Shown here one piece after another: positions 10,330-63,832 of a stretch of DNA of 64,000 nucleotides. The notes under the pieces were generated by a model. That model was not told the origin of the DNA and did no database searches. It saw only the letters and a list, made by a program, of their open reading frames with translations. The position numbers were made by a program, and so were the translations under genes. The stretch's first letter is position 1, and each line of letters begins with the position of its first letter. The stretch comes from Rebecca billardiae RCC1528 (taxonomy: Eukaryota; Protista; Haptophyta): positions 1,178,001-1,242,000 of the forward strand of contig OZ251226.1 of assembly GCA_965240325.2 (NCBI GenBank). Reading direction: 5' to 3'.

Positions 10330-10466
10330 CAAAATCCCCACCATCAGTCTAATCACACGCGCCATTATCTATTTTATTATTTTGATTTTGCAGAGCACGT
10401 GCGCCGCCCCCCCCCCCGGCTTTCGCTCACGCTCAGACCTTTCGGGGGGGGGGGGGCATAATAACA
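10330..10466 (-). mobile_element. Isolated, degenerate 5' terminus of the Helitron2-like family (copy C)
   Basis: TTTGATTTTGCAGAGCACGTGCGCCG(C)nGGCTTTCGCTCACGCTCAGACCTTTC(G)n matches about 40435-40506. The terminal inverted repeat is eroded. Confidence 0.8.
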
Positions 10467-36815: not shown

Positions 36816-37029
36816 CGCCGACGCCGCACTCACCGGGCGCGACTGACGCGACGGACCGGGCGTGACTTGTCGAGGAGCGCGCAAAAAGGACCTGCTGCTA
36901 CCGCGCGATCTGAGGGCTTGAGATCGTATTGGCGACAGGTTTCGTGATTTCCCACGCTAATCTGCGGCGGACGGCGGCGGAGCCGGAACCGGCTCATCCC
37001 GAGAAGCGACGCCCGCGTCGCTCCTGACC

Positions 37030-38193
37030 ATGCCCGTCTTCCAACCCATCGGCCAGAAGCGGCTGACCAACATCGCGGTAGTGCGGCTCAAGAAGGGCGG
37101 CCACCGCTTCGAAGTAGCCTGCTTCCCCAACAAGGTGCTCAACTGGCGCAACGGCGTCGAGAAGGATCTCGACGAGGTGCTGCAATCGCGCCAGATCTTT
37201 GCAAACGTGTCGAAGGGCGTGCTCGCCAAGGGCGACGACCTGCTTGCGGCCTTCAACACCGAGGACGAGGACAAGATCTGCGTCGAGGTGCTCAGCCGTG
37301 GTGACTACCAGGTCTCGGACAAGGAGCGTCACCTGCAGATCGACTCGCTTTTCCACGAGATCGCCACGATTGTGGCTGACAAGTGCGTGGACGCGACCAC
37401 GGGCAGGCCGCTCACGGTGAGCCTCATCGAGCGGGGGATGCAAACCCTGCACTACTCGGTCTCGACCACCCGCACGGCAAAGCAGCAGGCGCTCGATGTG
37501 ATCAAGCTCCTGGAGCAGAGCGACATGGGCATCATGCGCGCACAGATGCGCCTGCGCGTGCGAGCGGCCGCGGACATGGAATCCGAGCTGCGCGCTCTGC
37601 TTGAGCAGCTCGAGGGCACCAAGCTCGAGCGCGAGGAGAAGGTGAGCGGCACGTGCGAGATCGTCTGCCTCGTCAACCCGGGCTCGTTCCGGGAGCTCAG
37701 CAACCCGGCGAACAGCTCGATCGCAGGCCTCACAGTCGAGGTGCTGGACGCCAAGGCCGTGCGGATGGACGCCGACGCTGCCCACGGCGGCAGCAGCAGC
37801 GCACCCGCGGGCGGGGCCGTGGACACCTCGGCTGGAGCGGCGGTAGACAAGCCGGGTGCGTCGACGGGCGCCGATGGCAGCGCGTCTGAGGCGCTCCCGC
37901 CATCCCGCAAGCTGCCCGCAGCCGTGGCTGGTGCGGAGGGGGCGCGGAGCGGCGCTGGCGATGCGACCACCGCTGCTGCGGCGGAGCGGACGTTTGCGTG
38001 CAAGTCGTGCCCGGGTGCGCAGTTCGCGGACGCGCATGCCCACCGCGAGCATTTCAAGTCCGAATGGCACAAGTTCAACCTGTCGCGTAAGACCCGCGGC
38101 GCGGCGCCGCTCAGCGAGGAGGAGTTTGCCGAGGCCGAGGAGGAGTTGAAAGCCGCGGGTGCGGGTGGCGGGGACGACGATTTTTTCAAGTGA
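37030..38193 (+). CDS. SBDS: Ribosome maturation factor SBDS/Sdo1 with C-terminal C2H2 zinc finger
   Basis: QKRLTNIAVVRLKKGGHRFEVACFPNKV, IFANVSKG, AKQQALDVIK, RAQMRLR, CKSC...HREHFKSEWHKFNL. Confidence 0.97.
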   Translation: MPVFQPIGQKRLTNIAVVRLKKGGHRFEVACFPNKVLNWRNGVEKDLDEVLQSRQIFANVSKGVLAKGDDLLAAFNTEDEDKICVEVLSRGDYQVSDKERHLQIDSLFHEIATIVADKCVDATTGRPLTVSLIERGMQTLHYSVSTTRTAKQQALDVIKLLEQSDMGIMRAQMRLRVRAAADMESELRALLEQLEGTKLEREEKVSGTCEIVCLVNPGSFRELSNPANSSIAGLTVEVLDAKAVRMDADAAHGGSSSAPAGGAVDTSAGAAVDKPGASTGADGSASEALPPSRKLPAAVAGAEGARSGAGDATTAAAAERTFACKSCPGAQFADAHAHREHFKSEWHKFNLSRKTRGAAPLSEEEFAEAEEELKAAGAGGGDDDFFK

Positions 38194-38444
38194 GAAGGAC
38201 AGAGCCAGATGCAAGTCTTGGTCGAAGCTGGCATCCTTTGGGGTCTGGCCTACTTCATTTGCGCCGTACGGGCGTACATCAGTACGACATAGTCAACACT
38301 GTTACATGCGATGCGCCACATATCATCGGCGAATTATTATCCGGATAATTTATTATTAATAAATTGGATTCAGTCGTCTGCGTCGGATCATGGACATGAT
38401 GCACTGCTGACCCCGTGACGGTTAATCACGCAGTAGTTAGTGTG

Positions 38445-40520
38445 TATATATATATATGATCGGCTACGCCGATCTTCGGGTAGTAAACAACGAAGTTGAG
38501 GGCGCACGGCCCTGGTAGTTGTCGCGTTCTTCACCGAATCACGATGCGCGCGCCCGGCGCGCCTCGCCGTGCAGGAGGCGCGGGCGCGAGTAATCGACGC
38601 GATCGACGGCCTCGGGGGGCTGCGCCGTGTCGCGGCTCTTCACGCAGCCGGCGTGCCCCTCGAGCGCGCGCACGCACTCGGCGGTGTCCACGCCCACAGC
38701 CGCACGACCGCGTCGCTGTCGTCGCCCGCGCTCGCCGCGACGCGCCCGTCGGCCGAGAGTGCGACCGCCTCCACCCAGCCGGCGTGCGCTACCAGCACTC
38801 GCGCGCAGTGCTCGCGCCCGCGCGCCCAGCTGGCGCGGGCGGCCGGGTGCGCGGCGCGCGGCGCGCGCCGCGCTCACGCGGACTCGGCCTCGGGGGGCTG
38901 CGCCGTGTCGCGGCTCTTCACGCAGCCGGCGTGCCCCTCGAGCGCGCGCACGCACTCGGCGGTGTCCCACGCCCACAGCCGCACGACCGCGTCGCTGTCG
39001 TCGCCCGCGCTCGCCGCGACGCGCCCGTCGGCCGAGAGTGCGACCGCCTCCACCCAGCCGGCGTGCGCTAGCAGCACAGCCTCGCACGGCCCGCGCGCGG
39101 CGAGCAGGGGCGCTCGCGCGCAGTGCTCGCGCCCGCGCGCCCAGCTGGCGCGGGCGGCCGGGTGCGCGGCGCGCGGCGCGCGCCGCGCCCACGCGGACTC
39201 GTGCGGCGCCGAGCCAACCGGCTGCTCGAGGCACAGCGCGAGGCAGCGGCCCGGCGCCGCGGCGGCGGCGGAGGCGCTCAGCCGCGCGAGCTGCAGTCAG
39301 TCCGCGACGCGCGCGCGCAGCGCCGCAGCCTCCGCGCGCGCGGCCGCGCCCGGCTCGCCGCCGCCGCCGCCGCGCGCGTCGGCGTCGGCGAGCGCCGCGG
39401 CCGTGTCCGCGAGGTCGCGCACGTACTCGGTCTCGAGGCCGTGCCGCGCGCGCGCCTCCCACCCGTCCGCGCCCGCGTCGGTGAGCTCGCGCGCCGCGTC
39501 GGCCGCACGCCCGGCCGCGAGCAGCGCTTGCACTAGCTCCTCGCACCGGCGCACATTGAGCACGGCGGCGTCGCGGCCGGCGAGGCCGAGGCGCGCGGCG
39601 GAGAGGAGCAGGGGCTGCGGCGCGACGCGCCGCCGCCCGTCCTCGCCGCCGGTGGCCTTCGGGTGGCGCAGCGGCTTGGCGGCCTCGCCCGCCCACGTGC
39701 TCCGCCGCCGCGTCGGCGAGCAGCACGGCGTGCAGCGCGCTCGGCGCCTCTCCGAGTGCCGAGCGCACCGCCTCGGCCTGCCGCGTTCGTGTGGCCAAGC
39801 TACTAGCTAGGCAGCGCCTTTTGTCATCGCGCGAAGCCGTGTGGAGCAGTATTCATCAACGGGACGAGATAACTATCAGAAGGGGGGGGGCCTTGCTCCT
39901 TACAACGTGGATCCTTGCTCGTTAGATCTCAGAAATAAGGATACGGTTATGAATCGCGCGCGGGAACGCCCTCGGGCTACCCGCGTCAATGATATCTCGT
40001 CGCCCGCGAGGGTTCGTGCGAAACGGTGCGAATACGTCGTGCTATAATACTTCCCTTCGCGGGCCACCCGGCTTTAAGAGATATTACCCGTGTATGAATC
40101 TTAACCTGATGATATCCGCCCCTGAGAAGCGACGGTTCATGACTTCAGATGCCGGCATAATACTTTACTTCAAGCGACATAAAAGCCGACCCAACCTCTC
40201 AGTCTCTTTTCTATGGTTGGCGAGCTGTTTCAGGCCCTTACAATTCAGCCATCTTACTTTGACGGAATGTTCGAACACACGGCTGGTATTATGTGCTATT
40301 CCACCCTGCTTTCCCCTAAGTGTTACTATCGTTAAAATTAAGGGGCAGTACAAACGCAATCATTGCGGCAGCGATATCCACTCATACGCGGTGGCCACCT
40401 AGCGAAAAATCCCCAAAATCCTGCGCGCATCCTCTTTTTGATTTTGCGGAGCACGTGCGCCGCCCCCCCCGGCTTTCGCTCACGCTCAGACCTTTCGGGG
40501 GGGGGGCGTGCGCCATAACA
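38445..40520 (-). mobile_element. Non-autonomous Helitron2/Helentron-like element, complete copy A, carrying WD40 pseudogene cargo
   Basis: (TA)n at 38445-38457; hairpin GATCGGC-TAC-GCCGATC at 38458-38474; inverted repeat GGCGCACGGCCC at 38501-38512 pairs with GGGGCGTGCGCC at 40503-40514 (one mismatch). Both ends match copy B in reverse complement. The repeat itself is directly visible; the superfamily assignment is inferred. Confidence 0.75.
38580..39800 (-). pseudogene. Fragmented WD40-repeat gene piece inside element copy A
   Basis: LLAHAGWVEAVALSADGRVAASAGDDSDAVVRLW..DTAECVRALEGHAG occurs twice (offset about 278 bp, 1-nt indel); in-frame TGA at 39297-39299; frameshifts. Confidence 0.75.
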
Positions 40521-41258
40521 GGTAGCAGTGCCGGTGACTTGATTGACTTACCGAGGTACAATACTGTCGTCGATATCTGCCACTGACTGATTCTACTCGG
40601 AATCTACCGTGATCGCGGCCGGGGCCCGCGTCATTATGACACCGGTCACTCGAAGCCTCTCAGTCTCAGAGATACAACCTGACTGATTCTGAATCGTCAG
40701 CCGGCTCACTAGCTAGCGCCGCAGGCGGCGGAAGCGTATTGTTCTTTAGCATTGAGGTCTTAACAGAGATTCGAGCCTGCAATGATTCGAGAGACGTGAG
40801 AAGACTCGACAGACTCACCACTCGGGTGTATTCCCGAGTGTAACACTGTAAGACGACTGACGAATATAAGCGGCCGGGCATTGACTGCAGCATATGTCAG
40901 TGTCAGACGAGTTATCGGCCAACTAGCTTTAGCTTAAGCCAGCTAGCAGCTTATTTTAAAATTAAAAGCTACGACTCTATGCTGATGATTGATGAGCTGA
41001 GGTGCTAGCTAGTAGCTACTGTAGTCTGTACTGACTCCAGTTACTGAGCGCTAGTCTGCACTACGGTTGTCTCGGAGTGTGTTATGACCCCGCAGGCCGA
41101 GCCTCAGTACGGGTTGACTAGCTGCTAGCTGTCTAGCTTATCTCGTCAGGAGTATCGGTAGGCTATGCTTACACTTACGGGCCTGCTGAGCACAGACTCA
41201 GAGTCACGGACTCGGGGCAGGCCGGCTTGGACAGATAAGTTTACAGAAGTACGCAGTA

Positions 41259-42011
41259 CTATGACACCAATGGTGCACCATTGTCAATGTCGAACAGGCC
41301 GTCCGGGAGCACGCGAACATTGAAGACCAGATAGCACCAGGCACCCCAGTCGTATAGCAAGCGGAAGAGGACGAGCTGGCTGCGTCCTGAGAGCTTCACA
41401 TCGAGCACGTATTCAACCACCCAGCCACGATCCTCGGGTGTGGCCGCCTCGGAGACGGATGTTGACTCTCGGGCGAATCGCCACACATCGCATTCGATGA
41501 GCAGCGCATATTCCTCGCGGATGAGCTGAGAGAAAGTGTCGAGATCCAGCGCCTCGCCAGACACATAGCGGTTGATCAGCTTTCCGTGCTTCCATGAGAC
41601 CCTCGGTGTCTTTGTGCTGACCCCGTGCACAAATGACTGTGTGCCCGCAGAAGGCGAAGTGAAGCGGAACGCTTCGGCGATGCCCTCCTCCCCGCGATGC
41701 TGCAAGGACAGCATGACGTACTCCACGACCTTATGCGGGCTCTTGAAGGCCGAAGGGCCGTCCGCTTCCAGCTCCTCCATCGCGTTGAGCAGACCGCGCT
41801 TGCGTCGCTCGCGCTCCAGGCTGACCTCGATGTCGTCACCGTCTGGCTCGCTCGAATCACAAGCTCGAACATTGCGCAGTCGGTGTGCTCGCGTGAGGTG
41901 CGCACTGCGCAGCGGCCGGAGGATCTGTCCGCGGCTGAGGCCGTGACACGCACCCATGAGCGCAAACATACATGCTGCGGCACCGATGGGGCGGGCCGAG
42001 TCCGCCATCAT
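41259..42011 (-). CDS. Hypothetical protein, probable signal plus transit peptide (possibly plastid-targeted)
   Basis: Hydrophobic N-terminus, then an Arg-rich segment; globular core SPHKVVEYVMLSLQ...GIAEAFRFTSP. Confidence 0.7.
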   Translation of the reverse strand: MMADSARPIGAAACMFALMGACHGLSRGQILRPLRSAHLTRAHRLRNVRACDSSEPDGDDIEVSLERERRKRGLLNAMEELEADGPSAFKSPHKVVEYVMLSLQHRGEEGIAEAFRFTSPSAGTQSFVHGVSTKTPRVSWKHGKLINRYVSGEALDLDTFSQLIREEYALLIECDVWRFARESTSVSEAATPEDRGWVVEYVLDVKLSGRSQLVLFRLLYDWGAWCYLVFNVRVLPDGLFDIDNGAPLVS

Positions 42012-42172
42012 TGGCCGGGCGGGGGCCGGGGGTGGGCGGTTAGTCCTCACCACCAAGGGCGGTATCACCACCATCCCCTCAGCCTGGTCAAGAAGCTCGG
42101 CGCAGGTTTGGTCGGTTTGACCAGTGGCAGTAGTGGACGCGCTGGCTGTGTGTGTGCACGGCGCAGCGGGAC

Positions 42173-45100
42173 ATGCCCTCCGCGGAGCGGGAGGAGGTGC
42201 GGGCGCGCGTGTGGCTGCCGTCCGCCAACGGCGATGACTTCCGCGCGGCGGTCATCGTCTCGGAGGAGCCGCTCGTGGTGCAGCTCGAAGAGTCTGGCGA
42301 GAAGCTGGAGCTCGCGCCCTCCGCCAGGCGGCTGTGGCCTCGGAACGAGGCACACCTCGTCGGCACCGACGACCTGATCCGGCTGCCTCACCTGGACGAG
42401 CCGAACATCCTTCACTCCCTCGCGACGCGCTTTGGGACGGATGCGATCTACACGTACACCGGGCCGATCCTGATCGCGCTCAACCCGTGGAAGCGGCTGC
42501 CGCTGTACGGCGCTGACGCGGTGGACCGATTCTTGCGCGCGGGCGACGCCGTGCGCGCGCCCGACTCGACGCTGCCGCCGCACGCCTTCGCGATCGCGTC
42601 GGCAGCGTACTATGGCATGCGACGCACCGGCAACAACCAGTCGGTTCTCGTTTCCGGCGAGTCAGGCGCCGGTGCGCGCGCATCCGCGGCCCGCGCGGCC
42701 CGTGCGCATGCATGCGCGCCCGTCCACCGCGAGCGCTCGGCGACGGCGTCGCCGGCCGACTGATCCGGCGCGCTGCGCCCCCTGCAGGCAAGACGGAGAC
42801 CACCAAGTTCCTCCTGCAGTTCCTCGCGGCCCTCTCCGGTCCCGCCGCCGCCCATTCCGGCGCGAGCGAGGCGGTGTCGATCGAGCAGCGGCTCCTCGAG
42901 TCCAATCCAATCCTCGAGTCGTTCGGGAATGCCAAGACGCTGCGCAACGACAACTCCTCGCGCTTCGGCAAGTTCATCGAGGTGCGCTTCGCCGCCGAGA
43001 GCGGCGCGATCTGCGCCGGCGAGATCTCGACGTACCTTCTCGAGAAGGTGCGCGTCGCGCACCAGGACGCGGGCGAGCGCAACTTTCACGCCTTCTATCA
43101 GCTGCTCGCGGCGAGCGAGCGCGGCGAGCACGCGCTCTTCAGCGGGCCGGACGCGCTCGCGCTGCTGCTCCGGCCCGTCTCGGAGCACACGTACGCGCAC
43201 GGCGGGCAGTGCGTGCGGATCGACGGCATCGACGACGCGGAGCAGCACGCGCGCACGCTCGACGCGATGGCGCAGATGGGACTCGAGCGCGACGAGCTGC
43301 GCGACGTGTGGTCGCTCGTCGCGGCGATCCTGCACCTCGGCGACGTCTGCTTCGAGGAGTCGGCGGCGAGGGCGGGCGAGGACGAGGCGGGCGGCGGCGT
43401 GCAGTCGGACGGCTCCGCCGTGCGCGCGGACGCGCGCGAGGCGCTCACGGTCGCCGCCAACCTGCTCGGCCTCGATCCGGACGCCGTCTCGTTTGCGCTG
43501 CGCCACCGGCACGTCGAGGCTCGCGGCGAGACCTTCATGGTCCCGCAGACGCCCGACCAGGCGTCGGACGCGCGCGACGCGCTCGCCAAGGCCATCTACG
43601 GCCAGCTCTTCGCGGCGCTCGTGCGCCTGATCAACGACCACCTGCACACGAACCTCGGCACGCCCGCCACGGGCGCGAGGCGGGGCTCGTCCGGCGCGCG
43701 CGACTCGGCCCATCCGGCCGGCACAAGGATGATTGGCGTGCTGGACATCTTTGGCTTCGAGCGGTTCGAGCACAACTCGTTCGAGCAGCTGTGCATCAAC
43801 TACGCGAACGAGCGGCTGCAGCAGCAGTTCAACCACGTCGTCTTCCAGCTCGAGCAGGAGGAGTACGTGCGCGAGGGCATCGACTGGACGCACGTCGAGT
43901 TCATCGACAACGCGCAGACGCTCGAGCTGATAGACGGCCGGGCCGGCATCATCCGGCTGCTCGACGGGCAGTGCCTGCTGCCCGCCGGCTCGGACGAGGC
44001 GTTCGTCGAGCAGCTGCGCTCGACGTGCGACAAGCACCCGTCGTTCGTGCGCGCGCGCTTCGCGGCGCGCACGGCCTTCGGCATCGCGCACTACGCGGGC
44101 GAGGTGCTGTACGAGGCGTCTGGCTTTGTGGACAAGAACCGCGACACGCTGCCGTCCAACCTGCGCGCGCTGCTCGTCGCGCCCACGCGCGAGGACAGCC
44201 CGCTGCGCTTCGCGACGGACGTGCCCACGTCGGCGCTGCTCGCCGAGCTCGCGAGCGCCACGCCGAGCGCCGGCGGCAGCTTCCGCGCGGGCAAGGCCTC
44301 GCTCGCCGCGCAGTTTTACAAGCAGCTGAACGAGCTGATGGCGCTGGTGTCGGCGACGACGACGCATTACGTGCGGTGCATCAACCCGAACGGGCGCAAG
44401 GCTGCGGGCGAGCTGGAGCTGCGCTCGGTGCTGCACCAGCTGCGCTGCGGTGGCGTGATGGACGCCGTGCGCGTCTGCCGCAGCGGCTTCCCGACGCGGT
44501 ACACCCACGCCGAGTTCGCGCGGCGCTATCGCTGCCTGTGCGCGCGCAGCGGGGCGGCGCCAGCCTCGGCGAGCGCGCGCGCGGCGAGTGAGGAGGTCCT
44601 TCGCGCGAGCGGCATCGGCACGGCCGACTGCGCGCTCGGCGCGACGAAGGTCTTCCTGCGGATGGGGCGCGCGGAGGTGCTCGAGTCGCGGCGCACCGAG
44701 ACGATGCTGCGTGCGAGCGTGCGCGTGCAGTCGGCCGCGCGCAGGCGGGCGTGCCGCGGCGCGTTCACGGCGCTGCGTGCGTCGAGCGTCGCCGTGCAGT
44801 CGGCCGCGCGAGCGCGCGCGGCGCGGTTTGAGGCGCAGCGCCGTCGCGAGGGTCGCGCAGCGCTGCGGCTGCAAGCGCGCGCTCGCAGCGCGCTCGCCGC
44901 GCGCCTGCTCGGCCGAGCGCGTGTGGCCGCCACGCGCCTCGCCGCCGCGTGGCGCGGCGCGTGCGCACAGCGCGCATTTCATGAGAACCTTCTCCGCCGA
45001 GCGGCCGTGCGCGCGCAGGCGCTGCTGCGGACTGCGTTGTGCCGACGCGCCTTCCTGGCCCAACGGCGCGCGGCGGTTGCCATCGAGTGCGCCGCGCGGC

Positions 45101-47258
45101 GGCGCAGCGCGCGGCTCGAGCGGAAGCGCCTCTTCGTCGCGCGGCACGACGCGGCGCAGCTGCAGCACAGCCTGCACGAGGCGGCGCACGACCGCACGCG
45201 CCTCGCATTCGATCTCGGCGTGCTGGCGGCTGAGCTCGGCCGCGCCGAGGCGGATCGTGTGCCCGAGCCCGAGCCCGGGTCTGGCGTGTTCGCGCAGGAG
45301 CTCGCCGAGCGATGCACGGCTCTCGAGGCGGAGCGCGACGCTGCACACGCAGCCTCGCGCGCGCTCGCCGCCGAGCTCGCCGCCCTCCGCGCTCGCGGGG
45401 GCCCGGCCCGAAGCCAGCACGGCGGTGGCCCGGTCGATGGCGCCGCAAGGGCGGCGGCGTGGAGCGGCACCGACGCAGCCGTGGCCGCACCTCTCCACGA
45501 CGCCACGAACCTGCCGTCTGGCACGCAGCTGCGCGAGCTGCGCGTGCGCGAGGCTGCGCTGGCCGAGGCGGAGTCGCAGCTCGAGGCGGAGGCGCGCAAG
45601 CGCGCCCGGCTCGAGAAGATCGTGCACAAGCTGATGAAGGAGCTGCGCGCCACCAAGGCGGAGGCGAGCGACGGGCGCGCTGCGGCGCTCGGCGCGCTGC
45701 GCGAGGTGGGCGCCGAGGTGCGCGCGGCGGTGGACGGCGCGGAGGCGTCGCTCCGCCGCGGGCACGAGCTGACGCAGCAGTCGCTCGAGCGCGTGGGCGA
45801 GCGCGTGCGCGCGGAGGTGGTCGAGGCGAGTGTCGAGCGCGCGGCGGCGGAGGTGCAGCCGCTGCACGAGCAGCTGCTCGCGGCGCGCGCAGAAGCGTGG
45901 CGCAAGGAGGAGCAGCTCGAGCTGCTGAAGGGCACGCTGAGCGCGCTCAAGGCCGAGCTCGAGCGCAAGTCGCAGGTGAGCGCGGGCGTGCGCGCCCGTG
46001 CACACCCTCGCGTGCGACCCGCGCCCTGCGCGCTCGGCGCCCTGCTCGGCACTTCACACCTCGCGCGCGCGCGTGACGGTGCCATCGCATGCGCACGCCG
46101 ACTCGCGCAGCTACTGACACACGCGCTGGGCACGGACGGTGCCAACGAGTCCGGGACAGCGGCGACAGGTGGCGGCGGGTGCAACGAGAAGCTTGGCGAC
46201 GGGCCGCCCACGCGCGGCTCGGTGCTCAGCGCCATCCTCGGCCGCACCTTCCACGCGGCCGCGAGTGCGACGGTTGCGCGCGCGCCCGTTGCGCCCGCGC
46301 CGGACGGCGCGGCCGCGCCTCTGGCCGCTGTGTCGGTGCACGCGCTGCTCGAGGAGGCGCTTCTCGAGCTGCTCCGACTGCGCGCGAGCGAGTCCGGTGG
46401 CGAGAGCACCGCCGTGCGCGCGGGCGCCTCCGGCGCAGCGCACGCCGACGAGCTGCGCGCGGAGACGCAGCGGCGCCAGCTCCAAGCGGCACTGACCGAC
46501 GCTTCGACACGGCTCGAGGCGGAGGCGCGCAAGCGCGCCCGGCTCGAGAAGATCGTGCACAAGCTGATGAAGGAGCTGCGCGCCACCAAGGCGGAGGCGA
46601 GCGACGGGCGCGCTGCGGCGCTCGGCGCACTGCGCGAGGTGGGCGCCGAGGTGCGCGCCGCGATGGACGGCGCGGAGGCGTCGCTCCGCCGCGCGCACGA
46701 GCTGACGCAGCAGTCGCTCGAGCGCGTGGGCGAGCGCGTGCGCGCGGAGGTGGTCGAGGCGAGTGTCGAGCGCGCGGCGGCGGAGGTGCAGCCGCTGCAC
46801 GAGCAGCTGCTCGCGGCGCGCGCAGAAGCGTGGCGCAAGGAGGAGCAGCTCGAGCTGCTGAAGGGCACGCTGAGCGCGCTCAAGGCCGAGCTCGAGCGCA
46901 AGTCGCAGGTGAGCGCGGGCGTGCGCGCGCGTGCGGACGCGCGTGCGGGGGCATGCTGCACAGGCGCAACGCTGCACCCACTCGGAGGCCTTGTCTGGGA
47001 CTGACCTTCAGCACTCCCTCTCGCGCGCGCCCTTCCGCGCAGCTGATCGACAAAGGCCTTGGACACGGGTCTGATGGAGCAGTCCCGCACGGCGGCCTGC
47101 TCAACGCCGTGTTTGCCAGCGGCAGCGCGCCTCGTAGTCGCCCGCCGGCCGGCAGCGGCGAGAACGGTGGGATCACGCGCCGGGTGCTCGAGGCGTCCCT
47201 GCTTGAGCTCCTCTCGCTTCGCGAGCAGCTCAAGCGGCCACAGGAGGTGGTGGCGTGA
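42173..47258 (+). CDS. Myosin heavy chain (motor, IQ-like neck, duplicated coiled-coil tail)
   Basis: IYTYTGPILIALNP, P-loop GESGAGKTE across intron 42672-42787, FGNAKTLRNDNSSRFGK, DIFGFE, NSFEQLCINYANE. Further predicted introns at 45976-46110 and 46909-47042. Confidence 0.96.
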
Positions 47259-47535
47259 CGTCTTTGACGAGTAGATGAGGAAGCTTGACAACCGCTCACA
47301 GAGCTTGACAGAGCGTAGGACCTCGCGGCCCTTGAGGCGATCCGACGCCATGCCTGGAGTTCACTGATCACGAAACACGACGACGAGCCTGTCCAGCCTG
47401 ACATCATCGCGCGAGGAAAGATGAGATCGTCATTTATGATCTGTCGAATCTTGAGCATTATCACGCAATAACCAGGTTGACGAACCTCATCGTCGGGTCG
47501 TTGTGGAGGGGACGGGCGGACTGGGGTTGATAAAA

Positions 47536-48075
47536 ATGGCGCTAATCGAGACGAGCATTCCTGCACACGAGCGTCGGCTGCGTATTGGGCCGGGCGGCGA
47601 CATACTCGTGCTACCACCCGTCGCACTGTTTGCTGCGCTCGGTGCTGGTGGCCTCGTTGAAGCTCTGGTCCACGCGACAGGCGCAGCCGTGCCACTGTTG
47701 CCCACGCGCGCATTCCCGTTTCTCCTTCGAGGAGCGATTTTTGCCGTTGCTGTCTTTGCGGCGATTGCCCTTGGTGTCACAAGTCACTCCGCGCTGGCTG
47801 CAGTCAACACGCAGCCAGAGTTCACACCCGTGAACGGGCTCGCCAAGACAGGCATCTATCGTCTGACGAGGAATCCAATCTACGCGGCATTCGTCACGAT
47901 CCACTTGGGCGTCGCCATCTTTGCAAACTCCATTCCGGTCTTAATCATGCTCCTACCTTTGCTTCTCTATCTTCACGGTACAATAGTCAAGGAGGAGGAG
48001 CTCCTCGCGCGACTCTTCGGCACCGAGTACGACGAGTTCAAGAGCAAGGTCCCGCGCTGGGCTCTCTGCTGCTGA
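47536..48075 (+). CDS. ICMT/PEMT-family membrane methyltransferase
   Basis: TM helices, TGIYRLTRNPIY, EEELLARLFGTEYDEFKSKVPRW. Confidence 0.88.
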   Translation: MALIETSIPAHERRLRIGPGGDILVLPPVALFAALGAGGLVEALVHATGAAVPLLPTRAFPFLLRGAIFAVAVFAAIALGVTSHSALAAVNTQPEFTPVNGLAKTGIYRLTRNPIYAAFVTIHLGVAIFANSIPVLIMLLPLLLYLHGTIVKEEELLARLFGTEYDEFKSKVPRWALCC

Positions 48076-48630
48076 TGACCCATTGCGGATCGCGCATGCA
48101 CGGCACAGCGCAAGCTGGGGCGATGCGGCGTCGCGCTCTCCACGCAGGCCACACTAATGTCCCGGGAGAAGCCTGGAGCTCGCGGACGCGAGCACGTGCC
48201 GGGGGCTATGGCCGCGTCGCCACTGGTGCAGCGGCGCGGTCGTGTCGCTGGTACCTATAGACGGGGACGCCCGCGCCCGCAGCGGCGGGGAGGCGCGCTT
48301 CCGTTCCGAGGTGGGCGCACGATGGGCGCACGGACAGCTTCGGCTGATGACAGTGCGCACCGTGCTGCACGGCACGCGCACACTACATGGGCTCGGGACA
48401 GTCGGGCGCCGGCCCGGACGGGAATTCTGAAAGGCAGAATGAGATGCTGACCAACGGTACAGTTGACTAGCTACTGTATAAGAATAAGAGACGCACACAG
48501 CTCAGGCAGGCGAGATTGACGCCCGCAGTAATTCCGACCGAAAAAATGTCGCGTGACGATTCCAACCTGAAAATAGCATATACGAATTCGACGATGGCGG
48601 CGAAGGGCGGACCAGCGAGGACGGTTTGAC

Positions 48631-51291
48631 ATGCGTCCGGCCATGTCGTCGTTTCTGTGCTGCGTGCTCGCCGTTGCGCTCGTTGGGCAGCTCGACGCCG
48701 CCCCGAGCGCGCGCCCCGTGGGAAGTCGCACCGAGCCGTGCGGCAACGTGGGCCGCGTCGCCGCCCTCCTCATCGGCTACGTGTCCACGAGCGACTCGCG
48801 GATGCGCCTGCTGGACAGGGCGCTCACCGCGCTCGCGGAGAACGTGGTCGGGCACCTCGGGGCGGACGTGCACGCAGTGTACCAGGCACAGAAAGCGTGC
48901 GCGCCGAGCGCACCGAGCGACGCGTGCGCCCGCGCGCAGCAGCAGCACGAGGCTCTCCTCGAGGGCGCGCTGAGCCGTCGGCTGCAGCCGCGCCTCCGCT
49001 CAGTCGGAGTCGTGCTCGATCCAAGCTGGACGGCGGAGCGGCTGCGCGCGCTGGGCCCAAGTGCCGCGGCGTCAGGCGTGCACCACGAGCGCATCCTTGA
49101 GCTCCTGTACAAGGGCGAGGCCTTCAAGGCCTTCGACGCGCGGTACGCGACAGGCACGACCCGTCAGTGGTTCAAGTTGCGAGAGGCGTGGCGGCTGATG
49201 CAGGCGCACGAGGCGCGGGAGGGCGCGGCGTACGACGTGGTGATCAAGCTGCGGATGGACGCCGTGCCGCTCCCGCGCTGGCGCCTCTGCCCCGCGCGCG
49301 ACGCGCTGCGGCCGGGCGACCCGCCCGTGGTGCACGCGCTCACAGACATAGTGTTCTGGGGCCGGCGTGACGCCATGCAAATTGCGGCCGATCTCTTCGA
49401 CAATCTCGCCTACTTTGAGCGGGCGGAGTACGCGCCGCCGCCGGCGGCGGCGCGCGTGGGGCCCGACGGCGTCGCGCGAGCGCCCGCCGCGCCGCCCGGC
49501 CCGCCGACGCGGCGGCGCGGCCGGCCGGCACTCGGCTCGCGGCCGGTGGCCGTGACGCCGACGCTGGTTGCCGTGCGCTCGCTGCCGGCGCGCGCGTTCT
49601 CAGACTGGACCCTCTACCAGAAGATTGGGCACGTGAACGTGCCGAACGTGTCGGTGGCGGCGTCGGCGGGGTCGGGGGTGCGGTATAAGCCCGGCCACGC
49701 GCCGCGCCACCTCGAGCGCGCCGCCGCGCAGATGGTGGACAGCCTGCGCGCCGCAAAGCGCCAGGGCTTGGAATGGGTAGATCCTCTCGCACCGCGGCCG
49801 GGCGCGCCGGGCGTGCGCGCGCTCGTCGTGTGCGGCGGTCGGTGCGTCGGCTCGCGCGACGGGGTGTTCGTGACGGAGCGCGACTTCATCGTGTGGCTCC
49901 TCGTGCACAACGTGACGGTGTGCGACATGGGCGCGGAGACGAGCTCGCTCCTGTCCAAGACCGGCATGGTCGTGCGCCGCCCCGCGTTCAACGGCTGTGC
50001 GTTTGAACAGCACAGCGGCGGCGGTGGCGGCGACCGCGGCGGCGGCATTGGCGGAGGCAGCGGTGCTGGCGGCGGCGGCGGCGGCGGTGGCGACAGGGGC
50101 GGCTCGTCGGCGGGTGATGCCAGTGCGGGCCGGGCGGGCACATCGGTCAGCACCGGTGCTGCGCACGCACTCGCCTTTGGAGCGCGCCCGGGCGCGGCGG
50201 CTTCCGCATCGACCACTGCCTCGGGCGCGACACGCACCGCGCGCGCGCGGACGCCTAGCGTGGCGCCCAAGCCGCCCCGCGCGGCCGGGGCCGCGCCCAG
50301 GTGCCCCCCAGAGGGAGGGACGTACTCCGCCGGGGACGCGGGCGCGCTTGGCGCACGCACCGCCGTTCGGCACGTCGCCCTTGCCTTCCACGGCCAGTTC
50401 CTGCACCACCGGTCAGCCGTGAAGGCGGTGACGCAGGTGTTGCCCGCGCAGTGGGCGGCCTTCCTGCCGGCCAAGGGCAAGGTTCGGCCAGCACACGCCG
50501 GCGCGGCGGGGCCGGCGGACGTGCCGGCGGACGCGCCGGCGCCTGTCGAGTTCGACACGTTCGTCGCGACGTCGTCGCAGCACCTCGAGCTCAAGCCGTG
50601 CGACGCGCTCGACGGCCCCGCCCTCTGCGCCAACTTGCACAACGCCGGCCGCTTCCGCTACGCCGAGTGCGAGCTTCGGCCGTACAACGGCACGGCGCAG
50701 ATCGCTCGCGCGGTGCAGCTCGGCCTGCCGTTTCGGGACGCGGCCAAGTACTCACTCTTCCCGCACCGCGTGCTCTCGGACTACTCCACGATCGCGCGCG
50801 CGATGCGGCTGCTGCGCGCGCACGAGGCGCGCGCGGGCGCGCAGTACGACCTGGTCGCGCTCAGCCGGATCGACATTTTCTTTTACTTTGTGCGCACGGT
50901 GCCACCCGCCGCGCCGCCCAGCTGGTACGCGCGCGTGCACGGCGCGCGCGTGGTCGGCCGGCGGCGCGCGCACAAGCCGCTGTGGGAGGACCGCTTCATC
51001 ATCGGCCGGCGCGCCGAGATGCTCTCGCTCGAGCGCCTCGCCGACGAGTTCACGCCCAACTTTGTGCAGCTGGGGAACCAGTCGTACCCGGAGGCTCAGA
51101 TCTGGCTGCACTTCAAGCGCGTGCTGGGGCTCGGCCGGCACGCGCCCACCGCCGCGCCGTCCTTCGAGGCGTTCCTCAGCATCGAGGGGTTTCGGCAGAA
51201 CAAGAAGAAGTTCAACAAATACTTCATCGAGCCTCCAGCCGCGCTCGTGCCCGATCCGCGCTTTCGTCGCCCAAGGAAGCCGCCGCATTGA
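48631..51291 (+). CDS. Secretory-pathway protein with two related glycosyltransferase-like modules
   Basis: Signal/anchor; two copies of the pattern AxRLxxAHEARxGAxYDxVxxxRxD followed by D-x-(V/F)-x-x-GRR; Gly-rich linker. The function is inferred. Confidence 0.7.
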   Translation: MRPAMSSFLCCVLAVALVGQLDAAPSARPVGSRTEPCGNVGRVAALLIGYVSTSDSRMRLLDRALTALAENVVGHLGADVHAVYQAQKACAPSAPSDACARAQQQHEALLEGALSRRLQPRLRSVGVVLDPSWTAERLRALGPSAAASGVHHERILELLYKGEAFKAFDARYATGTTRQWFKLREAWRLMQAHEAREGAAYDVVIKLRMDAVPLPRWRLCPARDALRPGDPPVVHALTDIVFWGRRDAMQIAADLFDNLAYFERAEYAPPPAAARVGPDGVARAPAAPPGPPTRRRGRPALGSRPVAVTPTLVAVRSLPARAFSDWTLYQKIGHVNVPNVSVAASAGSGVRYKPGHAPRHLERAAAQMVDSLRAAKRQGLEWVDPLAPRPGAPGVRALVVCGGRCVGSRDGVFVTERDFIVWLLVHNVTVCDMGAETSSLLSKTGMVVRRPAFNGCAFEQHSGGGGGDRGGGIGGGSGAGGGGGGGGDRGGSSAGDASAGRAGTSVSTGAAHALAFGARPGAAASASTTASGATRTARARTPSVAPKPPRAAGAAPRCPPEGGTYSAGDAGALGARTAVRHVALAFHGQFLHHRSAVKAVTQVLPAQWAAFLPAKGKVRPAHAGAAGPADVPADAPAPVEFDTFVATSSQHLELKPCDALDGPALCANLHNAGRFRYAECELRPYNGTAQIARAVQLGLPFRDAAKYSLFPHRVLSDYSTIARAMRLLRAHEARAGAQYDLVALSRIDIFFYFVRTVPPAAPPSWYARVHGARVVGRRRAHKPLWEDRFIIGRRAEMLSLERLADEFTPNFVQLGNQSYPEAQIWLHFKRVLGLGRHAPTAAPSFEAFLSIEGFRQNKKKFNKYFIEPPAALVPDPRFRRPRKPPH

Positions 51292-53203
51292 ACTTTGACT
51301 TTATTCGCATCATCAGACGAAGGCTGGGCGCTTGCCGCACGCGCGTGATTTGCACGACGATGACGTGTAGTCATTGTCGAATACGTAGTAGTAGCATTGT
51401 ATCAGCGCAGTCCTAGTCCGTGTGTTGGCGGCCGTTGCTGTTATTAGTTATGGCGCACGGCCCCCCCGAAAGGTCTGAGCGTGAGCGAAAGCCGGGGGGG
51501 GCGGCGCACGTGCTCCGCAAAATCAAAAAAGAGGATGCGCGCGCAGGATTTGGGGGATTTTTGTATAGGTGGATTTAGGTGTGAAACCGCAGCATGTGTC
51601 TCTATATCGCTGCTCATGATTGCGTTTGTACTGCTCCTTAATCCTTGGATAGTAAGTAATAGAAGAAATCGGAATCAAATAGGACGAAGTCATCTCTGAT
51701 ACCATTCTGATAGTCAAGATTCGTGTGTTGAACTGACCATAAAAAGGTGAGATATCGAACTAATTCTCTGGATAGCTGTTCACTCCTCAGATTCTGACAT
51801 CAAAGCGACGCGATATGGTATTGCGCGGGTAGCTTGAATCGACGTTCCCGCGCGCCCTGGCCTTAGTCTTGGCCTAATGTGGGTGGCATTCGACGTACCT
51901 CTATCTGCGAGGATTAACAGCTCTCTAAAAACGAGTGTGTCCTGGACGGCACGGCGCAGATCGCTCGCGCGGTGCAGCTCGGCCTGCCGTTTCGGGACGC
52001 GGCCAAGTACTCACTCTTCCCGCACCGCGTGCTCTCGGACTACTCCACGATCGCGCGCGCGATGCGGCTGCTGCGCGCGCACGAGGCGCGCGCGGGCGCG
52101 CAGTACGACCTGGTCGCGCTCAGCCGGATCGACATTTTCTTTTACTTTGTGCGCACGGTGCCACCCGCCGCGCCGCCCAGCTGGTACGCGCGCGTGCACG
52201 GCGCGCGCGTGGTCGGCCGGCGGCGCGCGCACAAGCCGCTGTGGGAGGACCGCTTCATCATCGGCCGGCGCGCCGAGATGCTCTCGCTCGAGCGCCTCGC
52301 CGACGAGTTCACGCCCAACTTTGTGCAGCTGGGGAACCAGTCGTACCCGGAGGCTCAGATCTGGCTGCACTTCAAGCGCGTGCTGGGGCTCGGCCGGCAC
52401 GCGCCCACCGCCGCGCCGTCCTTCGAGGCGTTCCTCAGCATCGAGGGGTTTCGGCAGAACAAGAAGAAGTTCAACAAATACTTCATCGAGCCTCCAGCCG
52501 CGCTCGTGCCCGATCCGCGCTTTCGTCGCCCAAGGAAGCCGCCGCATTGAACTTTGACTTTATTCGCATCATCAGACGAAGGCTGGGCGCTTGCCGCACG
52601 CGCGTGATTTGCACGACGATGACGTGTAGTCATTGTCGAATACGTAGTAGTAGCATTGTATCAGCGCAGTCCTAGTCCGTGTGTTGGCGGCCGTTGCTGT
52701 TATTAGTTATGGCGCACGGCCCCCCCGAAAGGTCTGAGCGTGAGCGAAAGCCGGGGGGGGCGGCGCACGTGCTCCGCAAAATCAAAAAAGAGGATGCGCG
52801 CGCAGGATTTGGGGGATTTTTGTATAGGTGGATTTAGGTGTGAAACCGCAGCATGTGTCTCTATATCGCTGCTCATGATTGCGTTTGTACTGCTCCTTAA
52901 TCCTTGGATAGTAAGTAATAGAAGAAATCGGAATCAAATAGGACGAAGTCATCTCTGATACCATTCTGATAGTCAAGATTCGTGTGTTGAACTGACCATA
53001 AAAAGGTGAGATATCGAACTAATTCTCTGGATAGCTGTTCACTCCTCAGATTCTGCATCAAAGCGACGCGATATGGTATTGCGCGGGTAGCTTGAATCGA
53101 CGTTCCCGCGCGCCCTGGCCTTAGTCTTGGCCTAATGTGGGTGGCATTCGACGTACCTCTATCTGCGAGGATTAACAGCTCTCTAAAAACGAGTGTGTCC
53201 TGG
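50687..53203 (+). repeat. About 1259-bp direct tandem duplication (50687-51945 / 51946-53203)
   Basis: The copies appear identical except for one extra A near 51797; AC microhomology at the junction. The unit includes the gene 3' end and the first about 500 bp of the element. Confidence 0.93.
51946..52550 (+). pseudogene. Duplicated 3' fragment of the 48631-51291 gene
   Basis: Same sequence as 50687-51291, with no own start or signal peptide. Confidence 0.8.
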
Positions 53204-54451
53204 ACAGCTTGAAAGGGGAAATCCAAATTTTGCGGTTTTAACCCAATAAGATTCTCATGCCCATATTCAGCATGAGTAGTCATAGGACAATTCATCGGTG
53301 AACAGAATCAAGAAGCCTGGCTTCTTGATATCGAGATCCGATTCACAAAGCCAATCAGCGTGGTCTCCAACTGGCTTGTTAATCACCTGAAAATGGTAAC
53401 GGTGATTAGTGATCACCCGCGTGTCGATGTGATTATTGTGACGAGCAGCCTGAAACCATAATAATAAGCGCGAGTTGCGAGTCGTGAACCGTCACTTTTA
53501 AAATCGGACCCCCGTGCGAGGCGTCGCGCCGCGGACGGCGGCGCCCGGCGTGAGTGACGGCGTCCGCCGGGCCGCCGTGGGCGATGGCGCGCGGCGCGTG
53601 ACCCGACGTCGCTCGCGCGGCTATGGACTCGCTCGAGGGAGCGCTGTGCGCGCTCGCCGAGCCGCCGCTGCCCGCCGCCGCCGCAAGCCGCAGGCCGCTC
53701 GCGCGCCGCGGCCGCGGCGAGGCGCGCCGGCGGCGGCGGCGTGGCGCGCTGCGGAGGCGCCGCTGCTGCCGCCGCGCGCGGCGCAGCGGCTTCTCGCGCA
53801 GTGGTCGGGCGCGGCGCTGTGGCTCGCACCACTGCACCGCGCCCTCGTGGCGGACGGCGGCGCACGCGGCCGCGGCCGTGTGGGCGATGGCGCGCGGCGC
53901 GCGACCCGCGGCGCTCGGCCGTGCGGGCGCGCTCGCGCGGCTATGGACTCGCTCGAGGGAGCGCTGTGCGCGCTCGCCGAGCCGCCGCTGCCCGCCGCCG
54001 CCGCAAGCCGCAAGCCGCTCGCGCGCCGTGGTCCTGGCTGAGGCGGGCGGCGGCGGCGCGGCGCGCGCCGCGGAGGCGCCGCTGCTCGGCCGCCGCGCGC
54101 GGCGCCGAGCGGCTTCTGCCTTCTCGCGAAGTGGTCGGGCGCGGCGCTGTGGCTGCTCTGCGCGCAGCGCGGCTGCGCACACAACGCGCGTGCGAGCTCG
54201 CGTGCACCCCCGGCGCCGCCGCCCGGCTGTCGGATCTTATTGCGCGCCGCTCTGCCTCAGCTGCGTCGCCGTTCACACTGAGCCGAGCACTTGGCAGTCG
54301 GCTGACTCGCCAGTGTGACTCGGCTGCACGGCGCATGCACCGTCCGACCGTCCGACCGTGTCGTCACAAGCCGGCTGCTAGGGCCGTGCGCCCTCAACTT
54401 CGTTGTTCACTACCCGAAGATCGGCGTAGCCGATCATATATATATATATAT
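52706..54451 (+). mobile_element. Non-autonomous Helitron2/Helentron-like element, complete copy B (truncated duplicate at 51447-51945)
   Basis: GTTAT + GGCGCACGGCCC (52711-52722) within a C-run/G-run hairpin; GGGCCGTGCGCC at 54381-54392; hairpin at 54419-54435; (AT)n at 54436-54451; GC-rich cargo at about 53510-54300. Confidence 0.75.
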
Positions 54452-56031
54452 GTATTAATGTGGTTGATGATATGCCATCATGCTGCTCTCCGCTAGCCGC
54501 TAGGTCGGCGGGCGGCGACATCGATTACGACCTCACCCTCATCCAAGTGCTCCGAAAGGCGCTCGGCCGCGGCGGCATCTGCCGTCGCCGCTGCGTGCCC
54601 CAGGCCGAGGCGGTGCTCCATCCCGGCCCCGCTGGCCGCTCCCGTAGAGGGGCAGGGCTCCGGGTGGCGCACTGCCTGCCACCTGGTCGGAAGGCGCGGA
54701 CGCATTCTATGTGTAGTCTGCTGCACTTTGAGCCTGACGCTTGCCCGTTGCATGCCACGTCGTTAAATTAATATATAGAGAGAGGATATATATACTATAT
54801 ATATAGTAGCTATGCCTATAGACTGTAGCTAACTGACCGGTATATATCATTGTTGCTGCTGAGTAGTTAGTGCTGCTATAAATTATTGCTATGTTTTATG
54901 ATGAGCAGTACAGGCAATCGCGGGCAATAAGGAGCTGTCACGTTAAGAAACTGGGGCTTGCTATCTGCGGATCTGGCCTAGAAACTGAGACTAGCGATTG
55001 GCTGGTTCGCTATACGCATAGTCACACTAAGAAACCGGGACTACGTCGTCCCGGCTGACGAGTGGTCCGCCGAGGGCGAGGCGCAGTCGGCCCGCGTCGG
55101 GGACGCGGCGCGCGGCCCGACTACGAGTACAGGCCAAGTCCCGACTTCTCCTGATGACTGACTCCTGGCCAGTGCACCGCAGCATCCATGCAACATCATG
55201 CCAGACTTGCTCCAAAAAGGCCCAAAATTTTCTTCGGCCTCGCCGGCCGGGCCTAAAGACTCAGCGGGGGGCTCTGCTGCGCGGCGGGCGGACCTAGCTA
55301 AGAAACTGAGACTCCGTAGGCGCTCGGGCTACCGAACGGCTAAGAAACCGAGGCTAGCCGTGAGATCTCTGACTTCTTATTGCCCGCGATTGCCTGTAGT
55401 CATGTCAGTGCTGCGCTAACGATCGTCATCAATAAGCGTGCGCATGATGCATGACCCGTATTACGACCGTACACTACTGCTCTGAAGACTACTCTAATCA
55501 GACGGACTGAAGTCTGATAATCTGACTGATATCGATGATGATGATTCTTGATCGGAAGAGTGAGCGAAGACGCTTGGCTCCCCTGTATGTAGTACGCGGC
55601 TTATATCGGCAGCATCCCGATATGTCGCGATGCGATGATGATGATGATATATCGTTGATGCGTGCATCATCACACCATCATGCGTCGTGGGGGCTTTTGC
55701 GTGTCCGAGTGGTTAAGGACTCGGCTCAAAAGCTTAACACATCATCATCAATTCATCATCGTCATCATCAGTGATGACTTCTCATCAGTCGTCTTCTACA
55801 TCAGACATCATCATTGCGTCATAGCATCATTATTCATCATCATCAGCACTTCGTCATCATATCGTCGGGACGACGAGTCGGCGGTCGGGCCAGTACAGAC
55901 TACAGGCGAAGTCATATTCAGAATCATATATCGTGATCGTCATCACATCACTGCGCTCATCAGTGATCGTTGCCATCAATCAGAGTCATCATGCGCGCTG
56001 CCGATATGAGCGTGATGATGTAGTGGCGTCA

Positions 56032-57327: not shown

Positions 57328-57560
57328 GCCGGCCAGCTTGTGCGTAGCGCACCGGCTGGCACGCGCGTCGCCCGCGGCTTAGCCCGGGCGGGCGCGCGAT
57401 GAGGTGAAGAGCTCGGGCGCCCAGCCGTGTCGTCGCGTCGGCAGCGAATCTGCTTGATGGGCGCCTCCGCCGCTGGTTCTTCGCACGCGTGCGCTTCCAT
57501 CTGCTGCTGCAACTGCGCCGGGATGGCTGCTCTGGCTGGCGCGGCGGCGTCGCCTGCCGG

Positions 57561-63666: not shown

Positions 63667-63832
63667 TCCGAGTGCTTCCGGCCTTGATCTGCATGCCGAG
63701 TTGATATCACAGTCAAAAAAGTGCTCGACTTTGGCCAAAAGTTTGATAGTCAGATACTGGAGCGCGGTTCGAATTTGGGCCGCCGCGCGATGCACGCGCA
63801 GTCCAAATCACGCGCGATCAGCAGGGCGGCCA

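Follow-up and report, generated by a model that had tools for sequence, protein, structure and literature searches.

A probable Helitron2/Helentron-type transposon family, recently mobile, in the haptophyte Rebecca billardiae

We analysed a stretch of 64,000 nucleotides from the haptophyte Rebecca billardiae RCC1528 (assembly GCA_965240325.2, contig OZ251226.1, positions 1,178,001 to 1,242,000 of the forward strand; hereafter the window, in whose own numbering all positions are given). Two elements in it, copy A on the minus strand and copy B on the plus strand, have both of their ends in common, at two loci where the flanks are unrelated and the interiors are unrelated too. With a probability of roughly 0.6, A and B belong, as non-autonomous members, to a single family of rolling-circle DNA transposons of the Helitron2/Helentron type (HLE2). 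On the best reading the family is new and recently active, but of a known kind and not a new kind of element. Copy A moved recently, as it is cleanly absent from three other sequencing runs. It was inserted in one piece, in a given orientation and at a selected site, with a duplication of 0-3 bp; conservation is limited to the structured ends, and the content between them is replaceable.

A recently active, sample-polymorphic Helitron2-like family is hereby documented in a haptophyte-like alga; our literature search found no paper describing such elements in the haptophyte lineage. Together, the filled and empty alleles offer a clean natural case of the choice of a TTAT^A/(TA)n site, of the end structures that are needed, and of the pick-up of a gene fragment of the STAND/NWD1 type. 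The features listed in a first-pass annotation of the window were all found where it had placed them; its interpretations are taken up below where the evidence touches them.

The empty site of copy A

The mobility of copy A can be read from short-read contigs of other samples. The protein SBDS is encoded immediately to the left of copy A, and an exact look-up of this protein led to three Logan contigs, L002, L003 and L004, from runs ERR14847148, ERR14847150 and ERR14847151. All three align to the window up to position 38450 and resume at 40515, with an overlap of 3 nt, and so represent the empty site of copy A; between them they contain two haplotypes that differ by 0.6%. In the orientation of the element, the empty allele reads CCTGT-TATATATA-CAC, and the filled allele reads CCTGT-TAT-(GGCGCACG ... 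GCCGATC)-ATATATATATATA-CACAC. The unit that is present in one allele and absent from the other is the 2057-bp core plus 8 nt of TA tract. Since the limits of this unit are exactly where the similarity between A and B stops, it has to be seen as a mobile insertion. The first-pass annotation had described a mobilised family and had proposed a comparison with empty sites; for copy A this comparison shows the flanks cleanly joined in the three other runs, a precise presence/absence polymorphism at the very termini that A shares with B. Two other views of copy A, as two separate small repeats or as a member of a gene family with conserved untranslated regions, were ruled out by its presence or absence in one piece.

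One could also suppose that there is no transposon here, that A and B are remnants of segmental duplications, and that the "empty" allele arose by a deletion between TA microhomologies. The flanking TA tracts could indeed mediate such a deletion, and local duplications are frequent in the window. The deletion, however, would have to match both limits of the A/B similarity to the base. Segmental duplication would also have to account for interiors that are unrelated while the ends are 92-99% identical, for flanks that differ entirely between A and B, and for a third 5' junction in the window that carries the same flank motif. We regard this explanation as extremely improbable.

The empty allele also corrects one point of the first-pass annotation, in which GTTAT was taken as the end of the element. 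It is instead part of the host target, since the empty allele already has it. The target can be written as (G)TTAT^A, on the border of a (TA)n tract (TTAT^ATATA in the empty allele). The flank GTTAT, or GT-TAT, precedes the element at all three 5' junctions that can be compared, those of A, B and a solo 5' fragment described below, with some ambiguity as to the cut point. As the insertion falls in a TA repeat, three placements of the cut are possible: GT^TAT, TTA^T and TTAT^A. The first of these, a T|T partition, also fits and would leave the host (TA)4 of copy A unaltered. A check of target-site duplications had been suggested as well, and no duplication of fixed length fits: at this one empty site, 0, 1, 2 or 3 bp (the last being TAT) are all compatible with the TA repeat, and longer ones are excluded.

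The TA tract itself measures 8 nt in the empty allele and 3 + 13 = 16 nt in the filled one. This additive count is equally expected if a circle with an 8-nt junction had crossed with an 8-nt target. On such a view a tyrosine or serine recombinase, as in Crypton- or IS607-like elements, or else host recombination would have integrated the joined-end (TA)4 of a circle into a (TA)n tract of the genome. Crypton- and IS607-like elements also have neither terminal inverted repeats nor target duplications. A crossover, however, could fall anywhere in the tract, while the GT-TAT junction is identical in A, B and the solo fragment; an invariant junction in three copies argues for a fixed cut. The inverted repeats of A and B are not symmetrical about a TA core, and the window is without a recombinase gene. 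Integration of a circle in this manner appears to us quite unlikely.

For copy B, exact look-ups of flanking and internal open reading frames (ORFs) gave no second empty site, and a search for homologues of the EsV-1-7 protein encoded next to it turned up no allele that was nearly identical. The contigs L002 to L005, from three runs, show differences of 0.1-2.8% against the window over 34797-42975 and 48498-51418, some of them indels in (TA)n and (CA)n tracts. The samples therefore contain other haplotypes or strains, which makes them a useful source of further presence/absence variants.

The two ends of the element

By blastn, the 5' ends of A and B are 92.2% identical over 128 bp (40519-40395 on the minus strand against 52706-52831); their 3' ends agree at 68 of 69 positions (38513-38445 against 54380-54448), and both are much as the first-pass annotation had it. 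A looser alignment of the 5' modules gives 78.7% over 244 bp. What A and B conserve amounts to no more than about 230 bp at the 5' end and some 70 bp (69 bp aligned) at the 3' end. The interiors, also in agreement with the earlier description, consist of 500-600 bp of AT-rich sequence that is alike only in patches, followed by 0.9-1.3 kb with 70-90% GC that is unrelated between the two. The AT-rich parts of A and B matched no domain and no RNA family. Rfam searches, at the gathering threshold for the whole window and at an E-value threshold for both copies, returned nothing credible and no tRNA match. A tblastx comparison of interior A with interior B was discarded, being swamped by GC-rich low-complexity matches.

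At the 5' end, the order of elements is (TAT)-GGCGCACG-G/C-C7-10, a 26-nt loop holding the mini-hairpins CC-GAAA-GG and GC-GAAA-GC, and then G8-C-GGCGCACG. The 8-mer GGCGCACG borders this fold-back on both sides as a direct repeat and is confined to the 5' end. The fold-back of a C-run on a G-run, enclosing CCGAAAGG and GCGAAAGC, had been noted at the outset and is seen in every copy of the 5' module. When folded as single-stranded DNA, GCGC and the C-run of A and B are predicted to pair with the downstream G-run and GCGC; in the solo fragment, where the first GGCGCACG is absent, the predicted stem is made of the C-run and the G-run only. The predicted energies of the three fold-backs range from -20 to -26 kcal/mol (z -2.3 to -2.8).

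At the 3' end there follow, in order, the complement of a 12-mer of the 5' end, a 26-nt spacer that is itself a stem-loop of 5 bp (CTTCG-N12-CGAAG), the perfect 17-nt hairpin GATCGGC-GTA-GCCGATC, and an AT tail. The 17-nt hairpin, already noted in the first-pass annotation, occurs exactly twice in the window against an expectation of 0.03. The sole difference between A and B in the 3' module falls in a loop.

The 12-mer and its complement (GGCGCACGGCCC and GGGCCGTGCGCC) form the asymmetric inverted repeat of the first-pass annotation, which is perfect in B and matches at 11 of 12 positions in A. Of random placements in this window, about 5.5e-4 yield a perfect reverse-complement match of 12 nt that links the first 20 nt with the last 100 nt. 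The 5' repeat lies 0-3 nt from the 5' boundary as placed by the empty site, inside the predicted hairpin. The 3' repeat lies 48 nt from the 3' terminus (43-51 depending on the partition), with the stem-loops in between. This offset is real, because the 3' spacer and hairpin were inserted along with the rest of the element. No inverted repeat is formed by the extreme termini themselves (TATGGCGCAC... and ...GCCGATCATATA).

The arrangement of the repeats bears on whether A and B could be Pack-type elements, moved by a DDE cut-and-paste transposase with duplication of TA or TAT. The TA or TAT on both sides could be such a 2-3 bp duplication, and gene-fragment cargo is known for Pack-type elements. 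The extreme ends of A and B, however, are not complementary, and on the 3' side more than 40 nt lie between the inverted repeat and the terminus, a stretch that was inserted too. A Pack-type origin is thus highly improbable.

Further 5' modules and a tandem duplication

Four 5' modules had been reported in the window, and a count confirms them, with starts at 40517, 51449, 52708 and 10463. A profile search of the window with nhmmer found no further 5' modules, only two 3' modules, and none that was more diverged. In 64 kb there are accordingly two paired copies with the same relative orientation of their ends, one fragment and one local duplicate.

The fragment is a solo 5' module that reads TAT-TATG-C13-loop-G11-CGGCGCACG...CAAAATCAAAA. 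It is without the first GGCGCACG, ends after CAAAATCAAAA, has the GT|TAT flank of A and B, and has no 3' module. Its shape is of interest with regard to retroposition. In stringent-type or microsatellite-specific pairs of long and short interspersed nuclear elements (LINEs and SINEs), a conserved 3' stem-loop and a simple-repeat tail go with insertion into the same repeat. A and B likewise have a conserved 3' stem-loop, a simple-repeat tail and a site in the same repeat, so they might be LINE-dependent retroposons whose 3' stem-loop and (TA)n tail are read by a microsatellite-targeting reverse transcriptase. The solo copy, however, keeps its 5' end and lacks the 3' end, which is the opposite of the 5' truncation left by reverse transcription. 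A target duplication of variable length is not seen, the mechanism has no role for an inverted repeat between the 5' and 3' ends, and there is no match to a tRNA or other RNA family. We find LINE-dependent retroposition very unlikely.

One of the four 5' ends had been put down to a local duplication, and this one (51449-51947) does belong to a 1260-bp tandem repeat of 99.9% identity. Each 1260-bp unit consists of 760 bp of host sequence (the 3' end of a gene and its flank) and 499 bp of the 5' part of the element, and the duplication copies the last 200 codons of the upstream gene, which encodes 886 residues. Two 5' ends of the element now stand in tandem, separated by a piece of host gene, and such a configuration might in principle become mobilised as new cargo. 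The Logan contig L005 passes position 50687 unbroken; the duplication may therefore be missing in that sample, or be an artefact of the assembly.

It is worth adding that short-read contigs tend to stop at the modules of this family: L001 begins in the G-run of the solo copy, and L005 ends 29 bp before copy B. The modules account for contig breaks at such places, and they are handy markers for the annotation of repeats and structural variants in this genome.

Comparison with known elements

The first-pass annotation had compared the family with Helitron2, Helentron and DINE-1 elements, and the architecture of the ends does match the published definitions of Helitron2, of Helentron/HINE and of FoHeli. 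The inverted repeats of Helitron2 elements are asymmetric and 8-15 bp long. The 5' repeat lies within a 5' hairpin at 0-2 bp from the end, and the 3' repeat precedes a 3' hairpin; the first base is T, and insertion is site-specific, with no target duplication (PMC3627910). In Helentrons, HINEs and DINE-1 the subterminal repeats are 12-15 bp long, and their distance to the end is 2-4 nt on the 5' side and 38-60 bp on the 3' side (PMC4067079). These elements also have a 3' palindrome, leave the target unmodified, contain microsatellites and capture gene fragments (PMC4067079; PMC11417382). The repeat of FoHeli1 and FoHeli2 is 12 bp long, and a mini-hairpin with GAA as its loop stands at the 5' end. 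Between the 3' repeat and the AT-rich terminus there are 38-51 bp; insertion is between TNAT and A, the figure legend of the same paper having T in place of A (PMC5148889).

The closest match to A and B are FoHeli1 and FoHeli2 of Fusarium oxysporum (PMC5148889). Both have a 12-nt asymmetric repeat and a hairpin at either end; on the 5' side there is a mini-hairpin whose loop is of the GAA type, and the 3' repeat is at a similar distance from the AT-rich 3' end (43-51 nt in A and B, 38-51 bp in FoHeli). All three 5' flanks in the window are TTAT with A as the next host base, as expected from TNAT followed by A, and the 0-3 bp at the one empty site are compatible with the lack of target duplication in FoHeli. 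There are differences as well. FoHeli elements measure 5-6 kb and encode a Rep/helicase (RepHel), whereas nothing is encoded by A and B, which measure 1.7-2.1 kb; the sequences show no similarity, and the hosts are a fungus and an alga. What sets the 5' end of A and B apart is its long and much larger C-run/G-run fold-back, which holds two GAAA mini-hairpins and comes with a directly repeated 8-mer; at the 3' end FoHeli has ATATTTT where A and B have (AT)n. A and B also depart from the published layouts in the 26 nt between the 3' repeat and the terminal hairpin and in a target on the border of a TA microsatellite.

The Helitron2 elements of Chlamydomonas reinhardtii and other hosts (Helitron-1N1_CRe and others; PMC3627910) resemble A and B in their short asymmetric repeats, in a 5' repeat that is close to the end and inside a hairpin, in the hairpin at each end, in the preference for T as first base, in site-specific insertion, and in non-autonomous derivatives that share their ends only. 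In these elements, however, the 3' repeat abuts the hairpin at 20-30 bp from the end, while in A and B it stands at 43-51, before a 26-nt spacer with a stem-loop of its own; their target is TTTT^T/C, and that of A and B is TTAT^A within a TA tract. With HINE and DINE-1 (PMC4067079), A and B have in common the positions of the subterminal repeats, the 3' palindrome, the microsatellite content and the capture of gene fragments. The last 60 bp define a HINE subfamily, and A and B likewise conserve their last 70 bp or so. Their conserved 3' block begins 3 nt upstream of the 3' repeat (from 54380 in B), which fits the rule for HINEs that the last 60 bp or so hold the functional signals. HINEs insert in T-rich sites and have T runs at their boundaries, whereas in A and B the T|T reading is possible without being unique; the autonomous partner of HINEs has an AP-endonuclease domain. 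A canonical Helitron (HLE1), with 5' TC, 3' CTRR and insertion between A and T, was also considered and was rejected: under any partition the element starts with TATGG, ATGG, TGG or GG only, and it has no CTRR end.

Single-strand transposons of another HUH group deserve consideration at this point, for example Replitrons mobilised by a helicase-less Y1 Rep. A non-autonomous element of such a group would likewise rely on hairpins and would insert in a fixed orientation, leaving no target duplication. Replitrons are algal elements presumed to copy and paste through a single strand; they mostly have no target duplication, have a hairpin at the right end and have tentatively been detected in haptophytes, and their non-autonomous relatives share about 50 bp per end (PMC10288648), much as A and B share their ends. 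The direct repeats of GGCGCACG at the 5' end recall the iterons bound by Rep proteins. The hallmark of Replitrons, however, along with the Y1 Rep, is a short direct repeat of about 6 bp at both termini, such as TAAAGG. In A and B only TAT is shared by the termini, as part of the TA tract, and there is instead an asymmetric inverted repeat, which is not a described feature of Replitrons. We consider this group a quite unlikely home for the family.

If A and B are HLE2 elements, as we favour, their movement would follow a familiar scheme. A trans-acting Rep/helicase (RepHel, of the Y2 HUH kind), encoded elsewhere, would recognise the GGCGCACG repeats and the hairpins on single-stranded DNA. It would nick the 5' end and peel off one strand up to the 3' stem-loops, and the peeled strand would be circularised and pasted into a new TTAT^A site. 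Foreign sequence may have been acquired earlier by bypass of the end or by template switching.

Several points speak against the HLE2 assignment. A Rep/helicase gene with these termini was not found in a search that covered the window: as the first-pass annotation had noted, no Rep or helicase domain was detected in any ORF scanned, nor any transposase, recombinase or reverse-transcriptase domain. There are two full copies only, and they are homologous to each other, so that their shared architecture counts as one observation. There is one empty site only, and its TA repeat masks the cut points and any duplication of 1-3 bp. Described members have a less elaborate 5' fold-back than the one seen here, with its loop of 26 nt and its pair of GAAA mini-hairpins, and at the 3' end a 26-nt spacer parts the repeat from the terminal hairpin, the two being immediately adjacent in the Chlamydomonas prototypes. 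As predicted for single-stranded DNA, the end structures fold better than shuffled controls only modestly (z -2.3 to -3.3). Exact scans of viral and JGI metagenome contigs with a 25-mer of the 5' loop and with the 3' hairpin gave 0 matches.

A further reading is a system that has not been described, one that would be specific for the edge of (TA)n tracts and would belong, for example, to a new haptophyte lineage of HUH proteins or recombinases and not to the Helitron-type RepHel. Such a system would recognise the GAAA mini-hairpins and the 8-mer iteron, and its circular intermediate would integrate via its own TA junction. We think of this as possible but on the whole unlikely.

Gene-fragment cargo

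The first-pass annotation went further and suggested that the family shuttles pieces of host genes. Copy A does carry a piece of a cellular-type gene, a fragment of an NWD1-like STAND/WD40 gene; the GC-rich part of copy B has no Pfam domain and a weak coding signal. The comparison for copy A is with P0005, an nSTAND1/NWD1-like protein of 1403 residues with 14 WD40 repeats. A stretch of the cargo is 47% identical to residues 638-724 of P0005, a helical linker that directly precedes the repeats, and a single WD40 repeat fragment further along, on a piece free of stops, is 40-50% identical to the WD40 repeats of P0005. A second copy of the WD40 fragment, at about 38600-38800, comes from the internal duplication of the cargo. 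By a codon-usage score trained on the window's own genes, the cargo has a host-like coding signal of 20-25 per 150 nt on the sense strand of the element; real genes score about 30. By these matches, what copy A carries is the decayed and truncated remainder of an NWD1-like STAND/WD40 gene, in collinear order, with stops that interrupt it and an internal duplication. No parent gene was found; the best representatives, at 41-47% identity, belong to other samples. Helitron2/Helentron-type elements typically carry gene fragments in sense orientation, and this counts in favour of the HLE2 assignment.

Directly after the 3' end of copy B, at 54475-54650, there is a short island of 70-78% GC with a modest coding-like signal; the surrounding intergenic region is AT-rich.

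The positions of the two copies, of their parts and of the further 5' modules are collected in Table 1.

Table 1. Features of the element family in the window
Feature	Position	Strand	Remarks
Copy A, whole inserted unit	38453-40517	-	2065 bp under the T|T partition; limits slide by up to 3 nt in the TA repeat; from empty-site contigs
Copy A, core GGCGCACG...GCCGATC	38458-40514	-	2057 bp
Copy A, conserved 5' module	40293-40517	-	nhmmer E 1.6e-74
Copy A, 5' subterminal inverted repeat GGCGCACGCCCC	40503-40514	-	11/12 against its 3' partner
Copy A, 5' fold-back	40454-40514	-	GGCGCACG, C10, loop with CCGAAAGG and GCGAAAGC mini-hairpins, G8, second direct GGCGCACG; predicted fold as single-stranded DNA -26.3 kcal/mol, z -2.8
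Copy A, AT-rich interior	39800-40292	-	46-58% GC, non-coding; only patchy likeness to copy B
Copy A, GC-rich cargo	38514-39799	-	73-90% GC; internal near-tandem duplication, spacing 278-315 bp
Cargo A, helical-linker fragment of an NWD1-like STAND gene	39300-39692	-	sense, host-like codon usage, stop at end
Cargo A, single WD40 repeat fragment	38877-39113	-	PF00400, 29.9 bits, E 7.7e-7
Copy A, 3' subterminal inverted repeat GGGCCGTGCGCC	38501-38512	-	
Copy A, 3' stem-loop GATCGGC-GTA-GCCGATC	38458-38474	-	
Copy A, (AT)n after the hairpin	38445-38457	-	about 5 nt of element tail plus host (TA)4 target; from comparison with the empty allele
Copy B, whole unit	52708-54440	+	1733 bp; same partition as copy A
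Copy B, 5' subterminal inverted repeat GGCGCACGGCCC	52711-52722	+	12/12
Copy B, 5' fold-back	52711-52769	+	two GAAA mini-hairpins between direct GGCGCACG repeats; predicted fold -23.7 kcal/mol, z -2.3
Copy B, AT-rich interior	52946-53500	+	about 36-55% GC, non-coding
Copy B, GC-rich segment	53501-54381	+	internal 324-bp duplication (88%)
Copy B, 3' subterminal inverted repeat GGGCCGTGCGCC	54383-54394	+	
Copy B, 3' twin stem-loops	54395-54435	+	CTTCG-N12-CGAAG, then GATCGGC-GTA-GCCGATC; predicted fold -16.9 kcal/mol, z -3.0
(AT)8 after copy B	54436-54451	+	element tail plus host (TA)n
Solo 5'-module fragment	10380-10463	-	84 bp; nhmmer E 2.8e-30
Duplicate of the first 500 bp of copy B	51449-51947	+	product of local tandem duplication
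1260-bp tandem duplication (two units)	50687-53205	+	50687-51946 and 51946-53205; 99.9%, one indel

The window and its other repeats

The window is eukaryotic and intron-poor, with about 66% GC and long, mainly uninterrupted ORFs. Among the proteins encoded are an inositol-pentakisphosphate 2-kinase, SBDS, a myosin, sugar transporters and an EsV-1-7 repeat protein. The sole named relative found, for one of the window's proteins, is from the haptophyte Diacronema lutheri, at 42% identity.

Other repeats were seen alongside the element family. A block of about 65 bp, 97% conserved, occurs at 2967-3036, 32814-32882 and 32957-33025 and contains a GC hairpin (GGCTGGAGGCTTCGGCCGCCAGCC) followed by GTTATAAAGGGGAATTTA. 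One of its copies stands immediately upstream of an ATG at 33049, and the block may be a promoter module or a small repeat family. A dispersed repeat links 6755-6831 with 63598-63674 (93.5% over 77 bp, with TTTAAATCATAGAATTAGTC at the end). The perfect palindrome at 2695-2735, GCAATG-C8-AGGGGCC-G8-CATTGC, has the C-run/G-run style of the 5' fold-back of the element, the solo copy also reading ...ATG-C13, and is otherwise unrelated to it. Repeats are also found within ORFs. An array of 93-bp repeats that are 98-99% identical runs from 17006 to 19068 within the ORF 15971-21361, which encodes 1797 residues and has no Pfam match. Internal repeat arrays are found as well at 9200-9750 and, as the EsV-1-7 cysteine-rich repeats, at 56520-57375, and the myosin tail contains a 423-bp repeat (45579-46001 and 46512-46934).

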